A stretch of 64,000 bases of DNA from Cyanophora paradoxa CCMP329 (Eukaryota; Plantae; Glaucophyta). The notes below the pieces were generated by a model, which had not been told where the DNA came from, did no database searches, and worked only from the letters and a program-made list of their open reading frames with translations. How positions within the stretch are numbered: position 1 is the stretch's first letter; each line of letters starts with the position of its first letter. This document shows positions 18,530 through 25,849 of this stretch, one piece after another. The stretch spans positions 186,001-250,000 of the forward strand of contig QPMI01000040.1 in assembly GCA_004431415.1 (NCBI GenBank). Reading direction: 5' to 3'. A program made the translations under genes and the position numbers.

Positions 18530-21500
18530 GCTAGCGGGAGGCCCCCGGGTGGCTGTGGCCCCTGCCGTGTCGTCGCCCCCGTTAACGTTAGCGCCAGCTA
18601 GCGCCAGCCTAGGGCGGAAGAACGAACGAACGCACGCGGGCTGCCGGGAGGAGGCGGGCGAGCCGGGGGAGGGGGAGGGCGGGCCGCCCTCGGGCACGGA
18701 GTGCGCCCGGCCCGCCGCGGCGAGCTGCCGGGGTACAGTGAGCGAGCGAGCGGGTCGGAGAGCGAGCGAGATGATGGCTCGGGACGCACCAGAGGGGACG
18801 CGTGCCCGGAGCCAGAGCCAGAGGCGGCCCCGGGCGGCCCCGCCGGGTGGGCCGGGGGGTGCTTGGGCGGACCCGGGGGCTTCCGCAGGGCCACCAGCCG
18901 GGGTACAATCTCCTCGAAGGACGGGCGGAGCCTGCGGCGAACGAAGTCAATTGCGAACGAAGTGGGGCCGCGGGCGCTGGGCGCGTGCGCACGAAGGCTC
19001 CTCGTCCCAGCAGGCGCGCATCAGGGCCGCCAGCTCTGGCGGGCAGTTCGCCTGACCCTCCGGAATCTCCGGCCGCAGGCCCTGAGCGGGGAGAAGTCGG
19101 CGAAGCCACTCGAAGCTCGCGAGGCCGAGCTTTCTTCGTTCGCACCCCCTTGCGGGTAACGGCGAGGGCGACTTGGATGGGGGTCATCCTGGGGTACGGC
19201 AGCTGAGACATCACCATCTCCCTGCGTGACGTCGGTCAGACGAACGAGCGCTCCTCCTCAGCTGAGCTTCGTTCGCACCACAGCGTGATTCCGAACGAGT
19301 AGACATCTGACTTGTCCGAGGCGGGCTGGTTCCGCAGGATCTCGGGGCTGTACCCCCCGGGAGGACCCGGAATGAGTCCAGCAGGGGGAGAGGGGCGGGC
19401 GAAACGGCTCAGGTGAGCGAGCGGGTCGCACCTCGTGTATCGGTAGGAGCCGGCCTCCTCCTGCGCATTCCCGCCGGCCCCCTCGAGCGCCCTTGCAAGG
19501 CCGAAGTCGACGATCTTGACGACGCCCCGCTCGTCCATCACGAGGTTCGCGGCCTGATAAGGGACGACGGCGTGACCGGAAGGAGCCGGGCCGGCAAGCA
19601 CGGCACGGCGAGAGAAAGGACCGCCGACGAAGGGCGCAAACTAATTCGAGCCAAAGCTAAGAGATGGGAGCTAGGAGAAGCTAGCCCGGGGGGGGAGGGG
19701 CCGGCAGGGGGGGGTACCTTGAGGTCGCGGTGGATGAGCTTGTGCCTGTGGAGGTGCCGCATGCCCATTGCGGCGTACAGGGCGAGCTGGTGGACGCTCC
19801 GGAAGTCGAGCAGGCGGCGCTGGCTCCCGTGCAGCAGGTCCGCGACCGAGCCGCCGCCAAGGAACTCGAAGCAGAGCGCGATGTACCCCGGCTCGACGCA
19901 CGCGGCGACGAACTCGACGACGTTCGGGTGCGGCCGCAGCTGCGAGAGGACGGCGAGCTCCCGGCGGAAGGCCAGCACGTCGGGGCCGTCCAGCTCCTGA
20001 GGGGGGTACACACAGTTAAGAAAAGAAAAAAAAGGAAAAAAGGAAGGAGGCGCCCGCTCGCCTGGTTGAGGAGGCGCTTCACGGCGACGAGCTTGCCCCG
20101 GACCATCGCCTTGAAGATCTCGGCCGAGCCGCCCTGCCCGATCCGCTCGATCACCTGGATCTCATCTGAGCGCCCAGGTCGGGTGGGTGAGCCGATGACG
20201 AGCAGAGGGGGGTGGGGGGAAGAAGGGGAAAGGGAGTACCGTTGTGGACCTCCCAGCCTTCCTCGCCATCGTCCTCCGGGCCCGCCTCCCACCCCCCCTC
20301 CTCGTCGTCGAAATGGGTGACGGACACGGGCGGCGCAACAAGCGCATCGCCGTCCGTGCTCGGCGCGCGGCTACCCCGGTGGAAGGACCCGGGGAACGGC
20401 TCCGACTCGGAGAGGGTTCGGTCGGCAAGGGATTGGAGGCCGCCTCCGGGTGCCGCGGCGCGGGTCGGGGGGGGTAGGAGGGCGTCGGCTGGGCCGGGGC
20501 TGGCCCGCGGCGTGCCAGAGCCGGAGGGGGAGAGCGGCGCGTGCTGGGGGGCCATGGCGGCGGCGGCGGCGGCGGCCGCTGCCGCGCGGGAGGAGGAGGA
20601 GGAGGAGCCCGGGTGGGGCACGGGGCGGGGCGAAGGGGCTCGTGAGCTTCCCGAGTTGGAGTTGCCGACGAAGACGGGGGCGGAAGCGTAGGCGGGCGGG
20701 GGCGGGGAAGGCGTAGTCGTGGCGTTTCGGGGAGCGACAAAGGGGAGGGGTGGCGTGATGGGGGACTTGGGTGCGGGGCCGGAGGAGGAGGAGGAGGGCG
20801 CGCCGCGGTGGGAGGACGGGGATGTGGATCGGGCGGCGCGGGCGGCGGCGCCGGGAATGGCGTGGACGAACTGCGCAAGGCGGGAGCGCAGTCCCGAGAA
20901 CCACCCGCCCTGGGCCTGGGGGCCGGAGGGCGAGCCGGTGTCGGCCCGCGAGGGCTCAGGTGAGGAGGCGGGGGAGATGGAGGGGCCGTCGAGGGGGGTG
21001 GAGACGGGGGGCGGGGCCGCGCCGGGGTACCGCGGCGCCGGGTGGAGGAGGTTGCCGGCGGCGGCGCCCAAGTCGGAGTGGGACGCGGGACGCGACGAGT
21101 GCGCACGCTCAATCTCCTGGTAGCGGACGAGCCCAAAGGCAGTCCCGAGCGAATCCTGCGCGGGCGGGCGGGCGGGCGGGCGGCCTCAGGAGGGTAAAAA
21201 AAGGAGGAAAAAGAGGTGCGGGGGGTACCGAGACGGAGGAAAGGAAGTCGACATCATCGTTCGTCCACTGCGCGATCGTCGTCGGCTCGGGGGTACCGAA
21301 GGAAAGAAAGGGTCGGGCGGGGAGCCGAAGGCGCACCTCGCGGATCGAATTGCACTGGTGGACGGAGACGAGCCCGTTCGGCGTACCCTGGTAGAACGTG
21401 CCAGCGACGATCCACGATTTGATCGATGTCTCGGCGTACAGGCTCCGGACCTCTGGCGGCAGCAGCCCCTCCGTTGAGCAGTCCCGCACCATCTTCGCGG

Positions 21501-22221
21501 GTGCGCGGCGCTCGCTCAGCGCAGACGGCGGCGGAAGGAGCGCAGAGAGACGGCGGCAGCGCACCAGCACTTTCCCCTCGTGCAGCGCGCCCAGCATCTG
21601 TTCCTTGAGGAACGGGTTCATGATGGCGGTGACCCGCGGAGAGAGGAACGCGGCGACGTCCGGGAGATGCCACTCGGCCTGCAGTCACGCGTGAGCGAAA
21701 AGAAACGCGAGCGAAAGCGAGCGATAGCGAGGCAGTGCGGCGGCGGCGCGGTCCCGGCCTCTGTCCTTTAGCGCGAACAGCCGCGCCGGTCTAGACACGG
21801 CTCCGGCGGGTTCGCCGCGCGCGAGAGCGCTTATTCGCACCTGTATTATGGGAGCGAACTCTGCAGCGTCGGCGTCCTGGTACGAGCTGCACGAGCGCTT
21901 CAGCAGGGGCGATCCGATCCGATCTTCGGATGAGGGGAGCTAACCGGATGATCACGCGCGACGCGGCCAGCTCCTCGCCGATTAGAGTTGCCTAAGCGGG
22001 AGCTAAGGAGCGCACGACACGGCGAAAAGCAGGGAGCGTAGCGCAACCGCTTTGCGGAAAGATTGGTGTAGGTCGCGCTGCTTTATCTCTTTGGTGAGCG
22101 CCTTGAGGAGATTATGCCGTCTTCGTTCGAGCGAAAGCCGCCGCTCAAGGTCTGCGACGTCCAGCGGCTTGGAAGAGCCGCGCCTGCCTGCGATCTGAGC
22201 CAGGGCGACCTCCGGAGCCAT
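18530..22221 (-). CDS. GAF domain - tyrosine-kinase-like (TKL/Raf-like) protein kinase
   Basis: Kinase motifs IGQGGSAEIF, VAVKRL, HPNVVEFVAAC, IHRDLK|AANL, KIVDFGLAR, SPE, KSDVYSFGITLW|EMV, GLRPEIP..CPPELAALMRACW..RPSFEEI. N-terminal GAF: DLHQSFRKA|ATLIGEELAASRVIIR...IKSWIVAGTFYQGTPNGLVSVHQCNSIRE|WTNDDVDFLSSVS|DSLGTA. The 3' end is approximate. Confidence 0.9.
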
Positions 22222-22471
22222 CTGCGGCCCGTCTGCGCGCTCGTTAGCGGGAGACGAGATCTACGCTCGCTGCGCGCTGCGGTTGAACAGAGGTACCATC
22301 GCAGAGACCGTCGCGCAGGTCGAAGGAATCGATACGGTGCCTCAGCCTATCCAGCTCGAGTGCGACCCGACCTCCTCTGCGGCTGCCGCCCTCTGCGGCC
22401 GCTGGGTCGGCCATCGCACGCCGGTCGTACCCCTCCCCGGCTTTTCCCCCGGCCGGCTGACTCGCGTCGCC

Positions 22472-23342
22472 ATGAACGCGCCCGGAATGCCACCCGAAGT
22501 AGGTGAGAATCTCACCGCGCGATCTTCATGCCGTCCTCGCGGCGCCGCTGACGATCCGGCTGCAGAGCTCATCGAGCAGACCTTGCACTTCGTCGCCAGG
22601 CAGCCCGGGATCATTCCGATGATCCAGGCTAACAACGCCAACGACCCACGATTCAGCTTTCTCTTTGGCGGGCCCGGCTCGTGCGTCGCCCCGCCCGTGC
22701 GGGAGCGCGTACATCGAACCAACGCGTTCGCGCCTCGCCTCGAATTCCAGGGACTACTTTCAGATGCGCCTCGCCCAGCTAGCGATGCCCGGCGGCCAGC
22801 CGATATTCGGTGCGCCCGCCGCGACGCCCGCCGCCCGTCAGGGAGCCTCTCTCACCGAAGCCGCGCGCGACAGGCATGCAGGGAACGCCGTTCCCGCCGG
22901 AGCGGTGCGCGCCTTCCGCCGCGCGTGCGGCGCCCGCTCACGGGCCGGCAGCTGCCCCGCCGGCCGCCCCCGGCCCTGGGCCCGCCGCCGCCCGCCGGGG
23001 CGCCAGCCGCGGCTCCCGCAGTTCCTCCCGCTGCCTCGCTCCCGGAGCCGCTGCACGGGGAGCTGGAGAAGCTCCTCGCGAACCTCACCGGCTCGAAAGA
23101 GTCCATCAAGGCGCGTACCCGTGGCCCCGGCCGCCCCGCGTTCCCCCGACGACCGCCGCAGTCGAGCAAGGACTGGGTACTGGCCAACAAGGGACACGTG
23201 GTGGAGATCGCCGCGCGCGTCCGCGCCAAGGTTCGCTCCTGTACCCCCGCGCCGCGCCGGCGCACCCCCCATCCGGGCCCCAACTGTTGCCCTTCCTCAG
23301 ATTACCGAGGTTCCCGAGGCGGATAAGCGTCTGTTTCTGCTC
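22472..23342 (+). pseudogene. Truncated 5' copy of the CHERP gene (SURP plus partial CID)
   Basis: Same exons as 24496 onward, but cut at DKRLFLL by the duplication junction. May be an assembly artefact. Confidence 0.6.
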
Positions 23343-24248
23343 GGCGGGGAGCCGAAGGCGCACCTCGCGGATCGAATTGCACTGGTGGACGGAGACGAGC
23401 CCGTTCGGCGTACCCTGGTAGAACGTGCCAGCGACGATCCACGATTTGATCGATGTCTCGGCGTACAGGCTCCGGACCTCTGGCGGCAGCAGCCCCTCCG
23501 TTGAGCAGTCCCGCACCATCTTCGCGGGTGCGCGGCGCTCGCTCAGCGCAGACGGCGGCGGAAGGAGCGCAGAGAGACGGCGGCAGCGCACCAGCACTTT
23601 CCCCTCGTGCAGCGCGCCCAGCATCTGTTCCTTGAGGAACGGGTTCATGATGGCGGTGACCCGCGGAGAGAGGAACGCGGCGACGTCCGGGAGATGCCAC
23701 TCGGCCTGCAGTCACGCGTGAGCGAAAAGAAACGCGAGCGAAAGCGAGCGATAGCGAGGCAGTGCGGCGGCGGCGCGGTCCCGGCCTCTGTCCTTTAGCG
23801 CGAACAGCCGCGCCGGTCTAGACACGGCTCCGGCGGGTTCGCCGCGCGCGAGAGCGCTTATTCGCACCTGTATTATGGGAGCGAACTCTGCAGCGTCGGC
23901 GTCCTGGTACGAGCTGCACGAGCGCTTCAGCAGGGGCGATCCGATCCGATCTTCGGATGAGGGGAGCTAACCGGATGATCACGCGCGACGCGGCCAGCTC
24001 CTCGCCGATTAGAGTTGCCTAAGCGGGAGCTAAGGAGCGCACGACACGGCGAAAAGCAGGGAGCGTAGCGCAACCGCTTTGCGGAAAGATTGGTGTAGGT
24101 CGCGCTGCTTTATCTCTTTGGTGAGCGCCTTGAGGAGATTATGCCGTCTTCGTTCGAGCGAAAGCCGCCGCTCAAGGTCTGCGACGTCCAGCGGCTTGGA
24201 AGAGCCGCGCCTGCCTGCGATCTGAGCCAGGGCGACCTCCGGAGCCAT
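23343..24248 (-). pseudogene. Truncated 5' copy of the GAF-kinase gene (GAF lacking its last helix)
   Basis: Duplicate of 21316-22221 that ends in the intron after HQCNSIRE. May be an assembly artefact. Confidence 0.6.
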
Positions 24249-24495
24249 CTGCGGCCCGTCTGCGCGCTCGTTAGCGGAGACGAGATCTACGCTCGCTGCG
24301 CGCTGCGGTTGAACAGAGTACCATCGCAGAGACCGTCGCGCAGGTCGAAGGAATCGATACGGTGCCTCAGCCTATCCAGCTCGAGTGCGACCCGACCTCC
24401 TCTGCGGCTGCCGCCCTCTGCGGCCGCTGGGTCGGCCATCGCACGCCGGTCGTACCCCTCCCCGGCTTTTCCCCGGCCGGCTGACTCGCGTCGCC

Positions 24496-25849
24496 ATGAA
24501 CGCGCCCGGAATGCCACCCGAAGTAGGTGAGAATCTCACCGCGCGATCTTCATGCCGTCCTCGCGGCGCCGCTGACGATCCGGCTGCAGAGCTCATCGAG
24601 CAGACCTTGCACTTCGTCGCCAGGCAGCCCGGGATCATTCCGATGATCCAGGCTAACAACGCCAACGACCCACGATTCAGCTTTCTCTTTGGCGGGCCCG
24701 GCTCGTGCGTCGCCCCGCCCGTGCGGGAGCGCGTACATCGAACCAACGCGTTCGCGCCTCGCCTCGAATTCCAGGGACTACTTTCAGATGCGCCTCGCCC
24801 AGCTAGCGATGCCCGGCGGCCAGCCGATATTCGGTGCGCCCGCCGCGACGCCCGCCGCCCGTCAGGGAGCCTCTCTCACCGAAGCCGCGCGCGACAGGCA
24901 TGCAGGGAACGCCGTTCCCGCCGGGAGCGGTGCGCGCCTTCCGCCGCGCGTGCGGCGCCCGCTCACGGGCCGGCAGCTGCCCCCGCCGGCCGCCCCCGGC
25001 CCCTGGGGCCCGCCGCCGCCCGCCGGGGCGCCAGCCGCGGCTCCCGCAGTTCCTCCCGCTGCCTCGCTCCCGGAGCCGCTGCACGGGGAGCTGGAGAAGC
25101 TCCTCGCGAACCTCACCGGCTCGAAAGAGTCCATCAAGGCGCGTACCCGTGGCCCCGGCCGCCCCGCGTTCCCCCGACGACCGCCGCAGTCGAGCAAGGA
25201 CTGGGTACTGGCCAACAAGGGACACGTGGTGGAGATCGCCGCGCGCGTCCGCGCCAAGGTTCGCTCCTGTACCCCCGCGCCGCGCCGGCGCACCCCCCAT
25301 CCGGGCCCCAACTGTTGCCCTTCCTCAGATTACCGAGGTTCCCGAGGCGGATAAGCGTCTGTTTCTGCTCTATCTAGGTGCACGCGTTGCGATCTGGCCC
25401 CCTCCCCTCAGCCCTGGCCCCCACGCCTCACGCGTACCCCAGTGAACGACGTGCTGCACCACGCCGCGAAGGCGAGAACCGCGTGCCCCGCCCGCGCTTG
25501 CCCCCTCTCCCTCATCCCTGTACCCCAGGCCCGCGAGGGGGCGCCGTCCGATTCCGTGTGCGACGCTTTCTCGCGGGAGCTGAGGGCGATCGTGGCGGCG
25601 GGGTACGCCAATCAGACGCCCCAGAACCAGGAGCGCATCCGGAAGGCGCGCCAACCGTACCCGTTGAACCTTCCCCCATCGCTCACACCGTAGCCCCTCA
25701 GGTGCTGAAGCTGTGGACGGATCGATCCATCTACCCCCGAGATATGATCGCGTCCCTGGAGGTGGGGTACCGTGCCCGCAAGCGCGCGCGCCCCTCTCAC
25801 TTGCCGGGGTACAGCGCCACTTGGACGGGCATCCGGAGCCTCCAACCGA

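Follow-up and report, generated by a model that had tools for sequence, protein, structure and literature searches.

The window analysed here is a 64,000-nucleotide stretch of the Cyanophora paradoxa CCMP329 genome (contig QPMI01000040.1, positions 186,001 to 250,000). On its minus strand, from 22221 to 18598, lies a nuclear gene model of 14 exons with a summed length of 2565 nt, in which one frame is kept over 854 codons plus a stop. The introns measure 46-164 nt, twelve of them with GT-AG borders and one with GC-AG. Each pair of neighbouring exons was tested for splice donor and acceptor, for a common frame and for the absence of a stop; the junctions between exons 10 and 11 and between exons 13 and 14 were set by hand from the sequence, the pairwise check of the latter giving weaker GC-donor solutions only. 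Family, profile and structure searches were run exon by exon. GC content and intron sizes of the gene fit the values published for C. paradoxa, with 67.6 % GC and a mean intron of 86 bp (PMC6704402). A bacterial contaminant is rejected in view of the introns throughout, the fusion to a eukaryotic kinase and a GC content like that of the window around the gene. The peptide strings quoted in a first-pass annotation of this DNA were all found on the minus strand where it had placed them. Its description of a sensor seen after joining about six small exons holds for the joining of small exons and not for the count, as the 14-exon model gives seven exons for the GAF domain alone.

Together, exons 1 to 7 rebuild one GAF domain of about 170 residues (summed length ~172). 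Exon 1 (22048..22221) begins at the first ATG after an in-frame stop and encodes a linker-type helix and the first GAF helix, matching positions 2-13 of a profile built from 118 sequences of a cyanobacterial GAF subfamily. Exon 2 (21945..21991) takes up positions 24-38, and exon 4 (21565..21678), the middle of the domain with NPF versus NPY/NPH in the subfamily, takes up positions 47-65. The GAF core lies in exon 5 (21337..21492; positions 89-137) with the signature KS..T.YQG.PNG...HQC..R, and exon 6 (21229..21267; positions 138-150) resumes exactly at the end of exon 5 with the motif WT..D...L. The last GAF helix (about 21100-21155) opens exon 7 (20240..21155), the remainder of which is a Pro/Ala/Ser-rich linker of ~290 residues. 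Exon 3 (21841..21886) would supply the GAF strand region; it is placed only by frame and GT-AG splice sites, and the subfamily profile lends it no support, its placement there being uninformative. For exon 4, an alternative donor site is possible at 21571.

Against the subfamily profile, exon 5 scores 34 bits (1.5e-12). Exons 1, 2, 4, 5 and 6 are collinear on this profile, with boundaries that abut at 137/138 and 150/151, and in a shuffle control the score at the right profile place was reached in 1/2000 shuffles for exon 1, 0/2000 for exon 2, 3/2000 for exon 4 and 0/2000 for exon 6. Generic Pfam and NCBIfam scans gave no GAF match on any GAF exon or on the read-through 21112-21684, even at E 10; the connection to PF01590 is indirect, through subfamily members that match this family at 1e-30 to 1e-53. 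A language-model feature search ranked GAF clusters first (0.96). For 10 of the 12 best local matches of exon 1 in cyanobacterial kinases, an HQC motif follows 135-157 residues further on, and exon 1 matches the helix directly upstream of the subfamily GAFs.

When the exon 5 stretch was searched against 1.84 billion representative proteins, four cyanobacterial multi-GAF/PAS hybrid histidine kinases (P0001, P0004, P0005 and P0006; 37-41 % identity over the core) were the only genuine matches at E<=0.001, and no eukaryotic GAF was found at this threshold. Two further matches (P0002, P0003) were discarded as low-complexity repeat proteins. The signature KS..T.YQG.PNG...HQC..R.WT is common to the query and all four kinases, and in each of them the GAF matching best is the one adjoining HisKA. 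One of the four clusters carries the name Xenococcus (P0004, which includes MDJ0901959.1 from Xenococcus sp. MO_188.B8). At the genomic level 498 matches were confirmed, the best 80 of which are nearly all labelled Cyanobacteria, and the named records of the subfamily are almost wholly cyanobacterial. In one word search 641 proteins of the subfamily scored E<=1e-5. A word search with 21229-21684 gave no match among proteins of 84-266 residues, a size range that says nothing on longer kin. Nearly all of the best 120 relatives of a subfamily GAF carry HisKA and/or HATPase_c and none (0/120) a protein-kinase domain, in agreement with the earlier statement that such GAFs normally signal through histidine kinases. 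In the C. paradoxa gene HisKA and HATPase_c are absent from every exon in family scans, and the output domain is a TKL kinase.

Among solved structures the subfamily profile comes closest to cyanobacteriochrome GAFs (8k9o, 6oap, 6bhn, 7ckv RcaE, 3w2z/5zoh AnPixJ). These matches, at 3e-19 to 1e-14, extend over the entire domain with the HQC..R.W stretch included; exon 5 alone gave no GAF match there. The profile matches, together with the four hybrid histidine kinases, the Xenococcus name and the labels of the best 80 genomic matches, bear out the initial assignment to a cyanobacterial sensor-kinase type of GAF related to cyanobacteriochromes. Whereas cyanobacteriochrome GAFs bind bilin via a Cys-His pair, found at profile positions 100-101 in 6oap, exon 5 has Glu-Val at the aligned place, as expected from the remark in the first-pass annotation that the canonical bilin-binding CH motif is not evident. 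The subfamily consensus also is without the bilin-binding Cys-His. The place of the DXCF motif appears to be taken by MNPF, as judged by eye via the 6oap alignment. Family scans found no PAS or PHY match in any exon. A bilin photoreceptor is rejected on the missing Cys-His, and for the cyanobacterial subfamily as a whole we found no reported ligand.

The kinase domain is encoded by exons 8 to 14. Exon 8 (20062..20165; Pkinase positions 2-33) carries the Gly-rich loop and the VAVK lysine and is followed by the GC-AG intron, only GC donors fitting at its 3' junction in the splice-pair check. Exon 9 (19718..19996) runs from helix C to the catalytic loop HRDLK and exon 10 (19432..19553; Pkinase positions 127-163; GTGCGA donor at 19431) from the AAN of this loop through DFG and the activation segment. 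The SPE and DVYSFG motifs lie in exon 11 (19279..19347; PF07714 positions 171-195). The C-lobe continues in exon 12 (19146..19221), based on splice sites and frame and without a family match of its own, and in exon 13 (18993..19081; PF07714 positions 226-246; GTGCGC donor at 18992), which reaches CWDEEP. Exon 14 (18598..18931) holds the kinase end RPSFEEIV, a Pro-rich tail and the stop codon; the family scan gave no match for this tail, and a further intron is therefore possible.

Read directly from the exons, the catalytic residues are intact (the VAVK Lys, the helix-C Glu, HRDLKAAN as HRDLKxxN, and DFG), as are the Gly-rich loop, SPE, DVYSFG and CW..P..RPSF, and the intact kinase with HRDLKAAN and DFG proposed earlier is thereby confirmed. 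Exon 9 (56.7 bits, 3e-15) and exon 11 (25.6 bits) exceed the curated PF07714 cut-off of 23.1 bits, and bacterial kinase models score lower. The best solved matches are TNNI3K, CTR1, KSR, TAK1 and B-Raf for the N-lobe and CTR1 (best for exon 11), FERONIA and DLK for the C-lobe. By these sequence affinities the kinase is a eukaryotic TKL of Raf/CTR1/MLK-like type, and the assignment to the TKL group made on first reading stands. CTR1 and other Raf/MLK-type TKL kinases (3ppz, TNNI3K 4yff, KSR, TAK1, DLK) are the best matches to both lobes and have the catalytic and C-terminal motifs in common with the gene, but their regulatory parts are of EDR1-type, ankyrin, Ras-binding or leucine-zipper character, with no GAF.

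We consider it probable that GAF and kinase belong to one nuclear gene of ~854 codons encoding a soluble, proximity-switched sensor kinase, in which a cyanobacterial-derived GAF has been placed on a host TKL kinase. Eukaryotes that took up bacteria also gained bacterial sensors, most of which kept their histidine-kinase output or were lost; this gene has the look of a bacterial sensor whose output was exchanged for host-type signalling. Its predicted N-terminus is a single GAF behind a linker-type helix like that ahead of such GAFs in the cyanobacterial multi-sensor histidine kinases. The domain would belong to a subfamily akin to cyanobacteriochrome GAFs, without the bilin cysteine, that probably entered the algal lineage from cyanobacteria. 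The most likely route would be exon shuffling from one of the alga's own cyanobacterial-type multi-GAF histidine kinases to a host Raf/CTR1/MLK-like TKL kinase.

In the cyanobacterial hybrid histidine kinases several GAF and PAS domains are linked by a continuous helix to a HisKA-HATPase_c output, to which a receiver may be added; the gene combines a single GAF with a disordered linker and a eukaryotic TKL kinase, and is interrupted by introns. The last GAF helix of the bacterial proteins passes directly into that of the histidine kinase, whereas in this gene it is followed by the disordered linker of ~290 residues (150/305 residues of exon 7 are Pro, Ala or Ser). From the replacement of a continuous helix by such a linker we infer that no rigid helix transmits a push from the GAF to the kinase. 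The GAF would instead govern the pairing or location of the protein, and a putative ligand or redox change may turn the kinase on by proximity and trans-autophosphorylation, by analogy with dimer-activated TKL kinases. Coupling of a sensor to a kinase through a long disordered linker is unusual, which counts against the proposed explanation. A more specific version, possible but on balance doubtful, holds that a cyanobacterial GAF (from the plastid ancestor or a later donor) was cut, together with its linker helix, from a two-component histidine kinase and wired to a host Raf/CTR1-type kinase, forming a glaucophyte-specific one-protein pathway from a non-bilin signal, perhaps redox or a plastid-derived metabolite, to Ser/Thr/Tyr phosphorylation. 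If true, this GAF-TKL pathway would be a kind of sensor kinase without earlier description.

Part of the GAF region is repeated in the assembly. A tandem duplication of 2,027 bp (copies 21316-23342 and 23343-25370) takes in exons 1-5; the first-pass annotation had picked out the region without seeing it. The only differences between the copies are seven indels of one base each, in runs of G or C, with zero substitutions, and the duplication is possibly an assembly artefact. Copy 2 holds a second, truncated set of exons 1-5 (23364..24248, minus strand), without exon 6 and without a kinase.

These features bear on whether a mis-assembled repeat alone has put the 5' exons beside the kinase exons. 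Exons 1-5 do lie inside the duplication, and differences confined to homopolymer runs are the error type of long reads. A tandem duplication, however, creates only one new junction, that between the copies at 23342/23343, and 21315/21316 is original. Across this original border the profile match runs on from position 137, the last of exon 5, to 138, the first of exon 6, a continuity that a false join would not give; a false join from the repeat is therefore rejected, and we regard this explanation as very improbable. The linker raises another alternative, of two genes or transcripts: a GAF-plus-linker protein ending at the stop at 20154-20152, with the 74-nt intron after exon 7 retained, and a kinase transcript whose start lies in exon 7, such as one from the in-frame Met near 20555. 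Retention of that intron leads to a stop after 28 further codons, the linker does contain an in-frame Met, and the gene models published for this genome reportedly require curation by hand (PMC6704402). The minus-strand frame of exon 7 is open, with no stop from 21185 to 20154, and along the linker each of the three minus-strand frames stays open over 190-360 codons; in GC-rich DNA long open frames arise by chance, which counts against the single-gene model. On the other side, a canonical GT...AG pair links exon 7 to exon 8 in frame and exactly at the kinase start, third-position GC of coding type (0.76-0.96) is continuous along exon 7, and no feature marking a gene boundary was found in the linker sequence. 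The first kinase exon, exon 8, has no ATG ahead of the Gly-rich loop. We judge separate transcripts improbable, and predict that the 14 exons are joined in one mRNA.

A real fusion could also carry a decayed GAF that has lost all binding and is left with only a pairing or scaffolding role beside a TKL kinase under constitutive regulation. Four positions invariant in ten reference GAFs of the subfamily are altered (Cys to Val in RC, Arg to Gly and Ser to Phe in RTS, Asp to Asn in HQCD), so that the sensing function may be lost; the N-terminal half scores weakly against the subfamily profile, and the linker stands where the bacterial proteins have a rigid helical output. Yet most of the core signature is kept, with KS, T, YQG, NG, HQC, R and WT all present in exons 5 and 6, the length of ~170 residues is preserved, and third-position GC shows selection on the frame. 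We therefore hold a decayed domain to be rather unlikely and retain the functional sensor kinase as the preferred reading.

No orthologue with a GAF-TKL layout was found in protein libraries, which apparently lack the Cyanophora genome, and in papers on algae and kinomes we found no description of a TKL or Raf-like kinase that carries a GAF. The closest precedents are the cryptophyte phytochrome-kinase hybrids (PEK), which, like the kinase-bearing phytochrome of Ceratodon purpureus, join a GAF-containing sensor of bacterial ancestry to a eukaryotic protein kinase (PMC4525182). They are alike in having a eukaryotic Ser/Thr or Tyr-type kinase in place of a histidine kinase, but carry a full PAS-GAF-PHY bilin photosensor, whereas the only GAF of the gene is of non-phytochrome type and comes with neither bilin cysteine nor PAS or PHY. 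If expressed as predicted, it would represent the same kind of rewiring as in cryptophytes, arisen independently, with a different, non-photoreceptor GAF and in the earliest-branching plastid-bearing algal group. The gene would also open a way into the large cyanobacterial GAF subfamily, as a protein in which one GAF is paired with a kinase that is easy to assay would be simpler to test than the multi-domain bacterial proteins, with their about 900-1,600 residues. In fungi, the group X histidine kinases combine an S/TK-related domain, GAF, histidine kinase and receiver (PMC6324907). They, too, are eukaryotic signalling proteins in which a GAF occurs together with a protein-kinase-like domain, but in reversed order, with the kinase-like domain N-terminal and a true histidine-kinase output present.

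The putative sensor kinase gene is encoded on the minus strand and is modelled as 14 exons, from an ATG at 22221 to a stop codon at 18600-18598, with a GAF domain and linker in exons 1-7 and a kinase domain in exons 8-14. All peptides quoted in the first-pass annotation, which proposed such a fusion, are found on this strand. Neighboring exon pairs were checked for donor, acceptor, common frame and absence of stops, with two junctions set by hand; the summed exon length is 2565 nt, therefore giving one frame of 854 codons from start to stop. The 13 introns measure 46-164 nt, and half of them have GTGCG as donor sequence. A GT donor is present in all except the exon 8/9 intron (19997-20061, minus strand), where only a GC donor fits (GCGAGC...CAG, i.e., GC-AG). 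GC content is high across the window (0.54-0.73 per 2 kb); together with intron size, it fits the values published from the PacBio assembly of Cyanophora paradoxa (67.6 % GC, an average intron length of 86 bp, and 9.2 introns per gene; PMC6704402).

Generic Pfam and NCBIfam models gave no GAF match on any exon or on the in-frame read-through 21112-21684, and a word search with the GAF stretch (21229-21684) found no match among proteins of 84-266 residues. GAF clusters ranked first (0.96) in a language-model feature search, and an exhaustive search of 1.84 billion representative proteins returned six at E<=0.001. Low-complexity repeats account for two of these, which were discarded. The remaining four, hybrid histidine kinases with a length of 1171-1474 residues (E 4.9e-14 to 3.4e-4), each contain several GAF and PAS domains and share with the gene the signature KS..T.YQG.PNG...HQC..R.WT; in all four (P0001, P0004, P0005, and P0006) it is the GAF directly upstream of HisKA, rather than the N-terminal copies, that resembles the algal domain most. 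A named cyanobacterial protein, from Xenococcus, belongs to one of the matched clusters.

We ran each exon alone against a profile of this subfamily (118 domains, 170 positions). Exon 5 (21492-21337) covers profile positions 89-137 with 34 bits (1.5e-12), while exons 1 (positions 2-13), 2 (24-38), 4 (47-65) and 6 (21267-21229; 138-150) are weak alone, each with a score at the right place that was matched in just 0-3 of 2000 shuffles. Exon 3 has no profile support of its own. The exons map collinearly with boundaries that abut in the profile, and the pieces total approximately 172 residues vs. 170 in the profile. The "coiled helix" noted earlier in exon 1 finds its best match in the helix upstream of the subfamily GAFs in bacterial proteins, with ten of the top 12 local matches located 135-157 residues before an HQC motif, which suggests that the GAF was excised from a multi-domain kinase along with its linker.

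Kinship with eukaryotic GAFs, which the first-pass annotation had set as refuting a cyanobacterial-type GAF, was not seen: at E<=0.001, the 1.84 billion representatives yielded none from a phytochrome, phosphodiesterase, ethylene receptor or other eukaryotic protein. A genomic scan using one genome per prokaryotic species yielded over 600 pattern matches and confirmed 498 of them; nearly all of the best 80 are labeled Cyanobacteria, the others being two metagenome bins (Rhizobium, Actinomycetota) and three entries labeled "uncultured bacterium". Likewise, when a subfamily GAF served as the query of a word search, the named proteins among the best 120 were cyanobacterial, except for one Actinomycetota bin. 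HisKA and/or HATPase_c occur in nearly all of these 120, consistent with the histidine-kinase output expected for this GAF type, and a receiver domain in most; none has a protein-kinase domain. The Rhizobium- and Actinomycetota-labeled bins hold cyanobacterial-type multi-GAF histidine kinases (L010, CALRKB020000006.1; L056, JBLNEP010000162.1; P0058), which are likely mis-binned because their nearest DNA loci are from Nostoc and Richelia (~77 % over 230-310 nt).

The solved structures closest to the subfamily profile are cyanobacteriochrome GAFs (8k9o, 6oap, 6bhn, RcaE, AnPixJ). In line with the first-pass annotation, which saw no evident CH motif, the bilin-binding residues are missing: exon 5 has Glu-Val in place of the Cys-His of 6oap, making a role as bilin photoreceptor unlikely.

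The kinase domain is, as proposed, of the TKL group and apparently active, judging from model matches, similarity to solved kinases and a full motif set. The PF07714 model scores 56.7 bits on exon 9 (3e-15; cut-off 23.1), successive segments of it are matched by exons 8, 10, 11, and 13, and scores from bacterial kinase models are lower. The closest solved structures are TNNI3K, CTR1, KSR, TAK1, and B-Raf for the N-lobe exon and CTR1, FERONIA, and DLK for the C-lobe. The Gly-rich loop, VAVK, HRDLKAAN, DFG, SPE, DVYSFG, and CW..P..RPSF are all found.

That GAF and kinase form a single gene is probable, with the join predicted from the exon model. A single exon of 916 nt (exon 7, 21155-20240) holds the linker together with the final helix of the GAF, no stop lies between the GAF and the donor at 20240, and a canonical 74-nt intron leads exactly onto the first kinase strand in exon 8 (20165-20062), an exon lacking an ATG. 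A point against a single gene is that open frames arise easily in such GC-rich DNA: over the linker region (20154-21253), each of the three minus-strand frames stays open for 190-360 codons. ORF length is thus uninformative about coding in this genome, and the frame had to be picked by third-position GC, which is 0.76-0.96 in frame throughout the linker exon.

The last GAF helix of the bacterial relatives runs on into the histidine-kinase helix, whereas its counterpart in the algal gene ends in a linker of ~290 residues, half of them Pro, Ala or Ser, from which we infer that rigid helical coupling has been lost. GAF domains often pair, and Raf/MLK-type TKL kinases are activated by pairing. Considering these aspects together, ligand- or redox-controlled pairing or recruitment of the protein, leading to trans-autophosphorylation of the kinase, would be the most likely mechanism. 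Its main functional rival is a decayed GAF that acts as a scaffold only; in its favor, four positions invariant across ten reference domains differ in the algal GAF, and against it, the core residues of the subfamily signature are retained.

Similar sensor-kinase combinations are known: eukaryotic kinase domains were recruited independently in the cryptophyte phytochrome eukaryotic kinase hybrids and the Ceratodon phytochrome-kinase (PMC4525182), and in fungal group X histidine kinases a GAF occurs alongside a kinase-like domain (PMC6324907). We found no description in the literature of a TKL kinase carrying a lone GAF of the cyanobacterial type, and neither GAF nor histidine kinases are mentioned in the genome paper on Cyanophora (PMC6704402).

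A tandem duplication of 2,027 bp (21316-23342 and 23343-25370) encompasses exons 1-5 together with the 5' portion of a plus-strand neighbor in head-to-head arrangement (22283-23342 and 24310 onwards). Between the copies there are no substitutions and seven single-base indels, each within a run of G or C, pointing to either a very recent event or a long-read assembly error. The gene model is not undermined, because exons 5 and 6, which flank the original junction at 21315/21316, continue the GAF profile across it without a gap. Beyond exon 5, the second copy of exons 1-5 (23364-24248, minus strand) continues as unrelated sequence that lacks exon 6 and the kinase; if real, this copy would be a truncated fragment of the gene, accompanied by a promoter-region copy of its own. 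Only the neighbor copy starting near 24310 is able to extend past the duplication; the neighbor shows a weak, sub-threshold match to a SURP module (0.0055, 17 bits).
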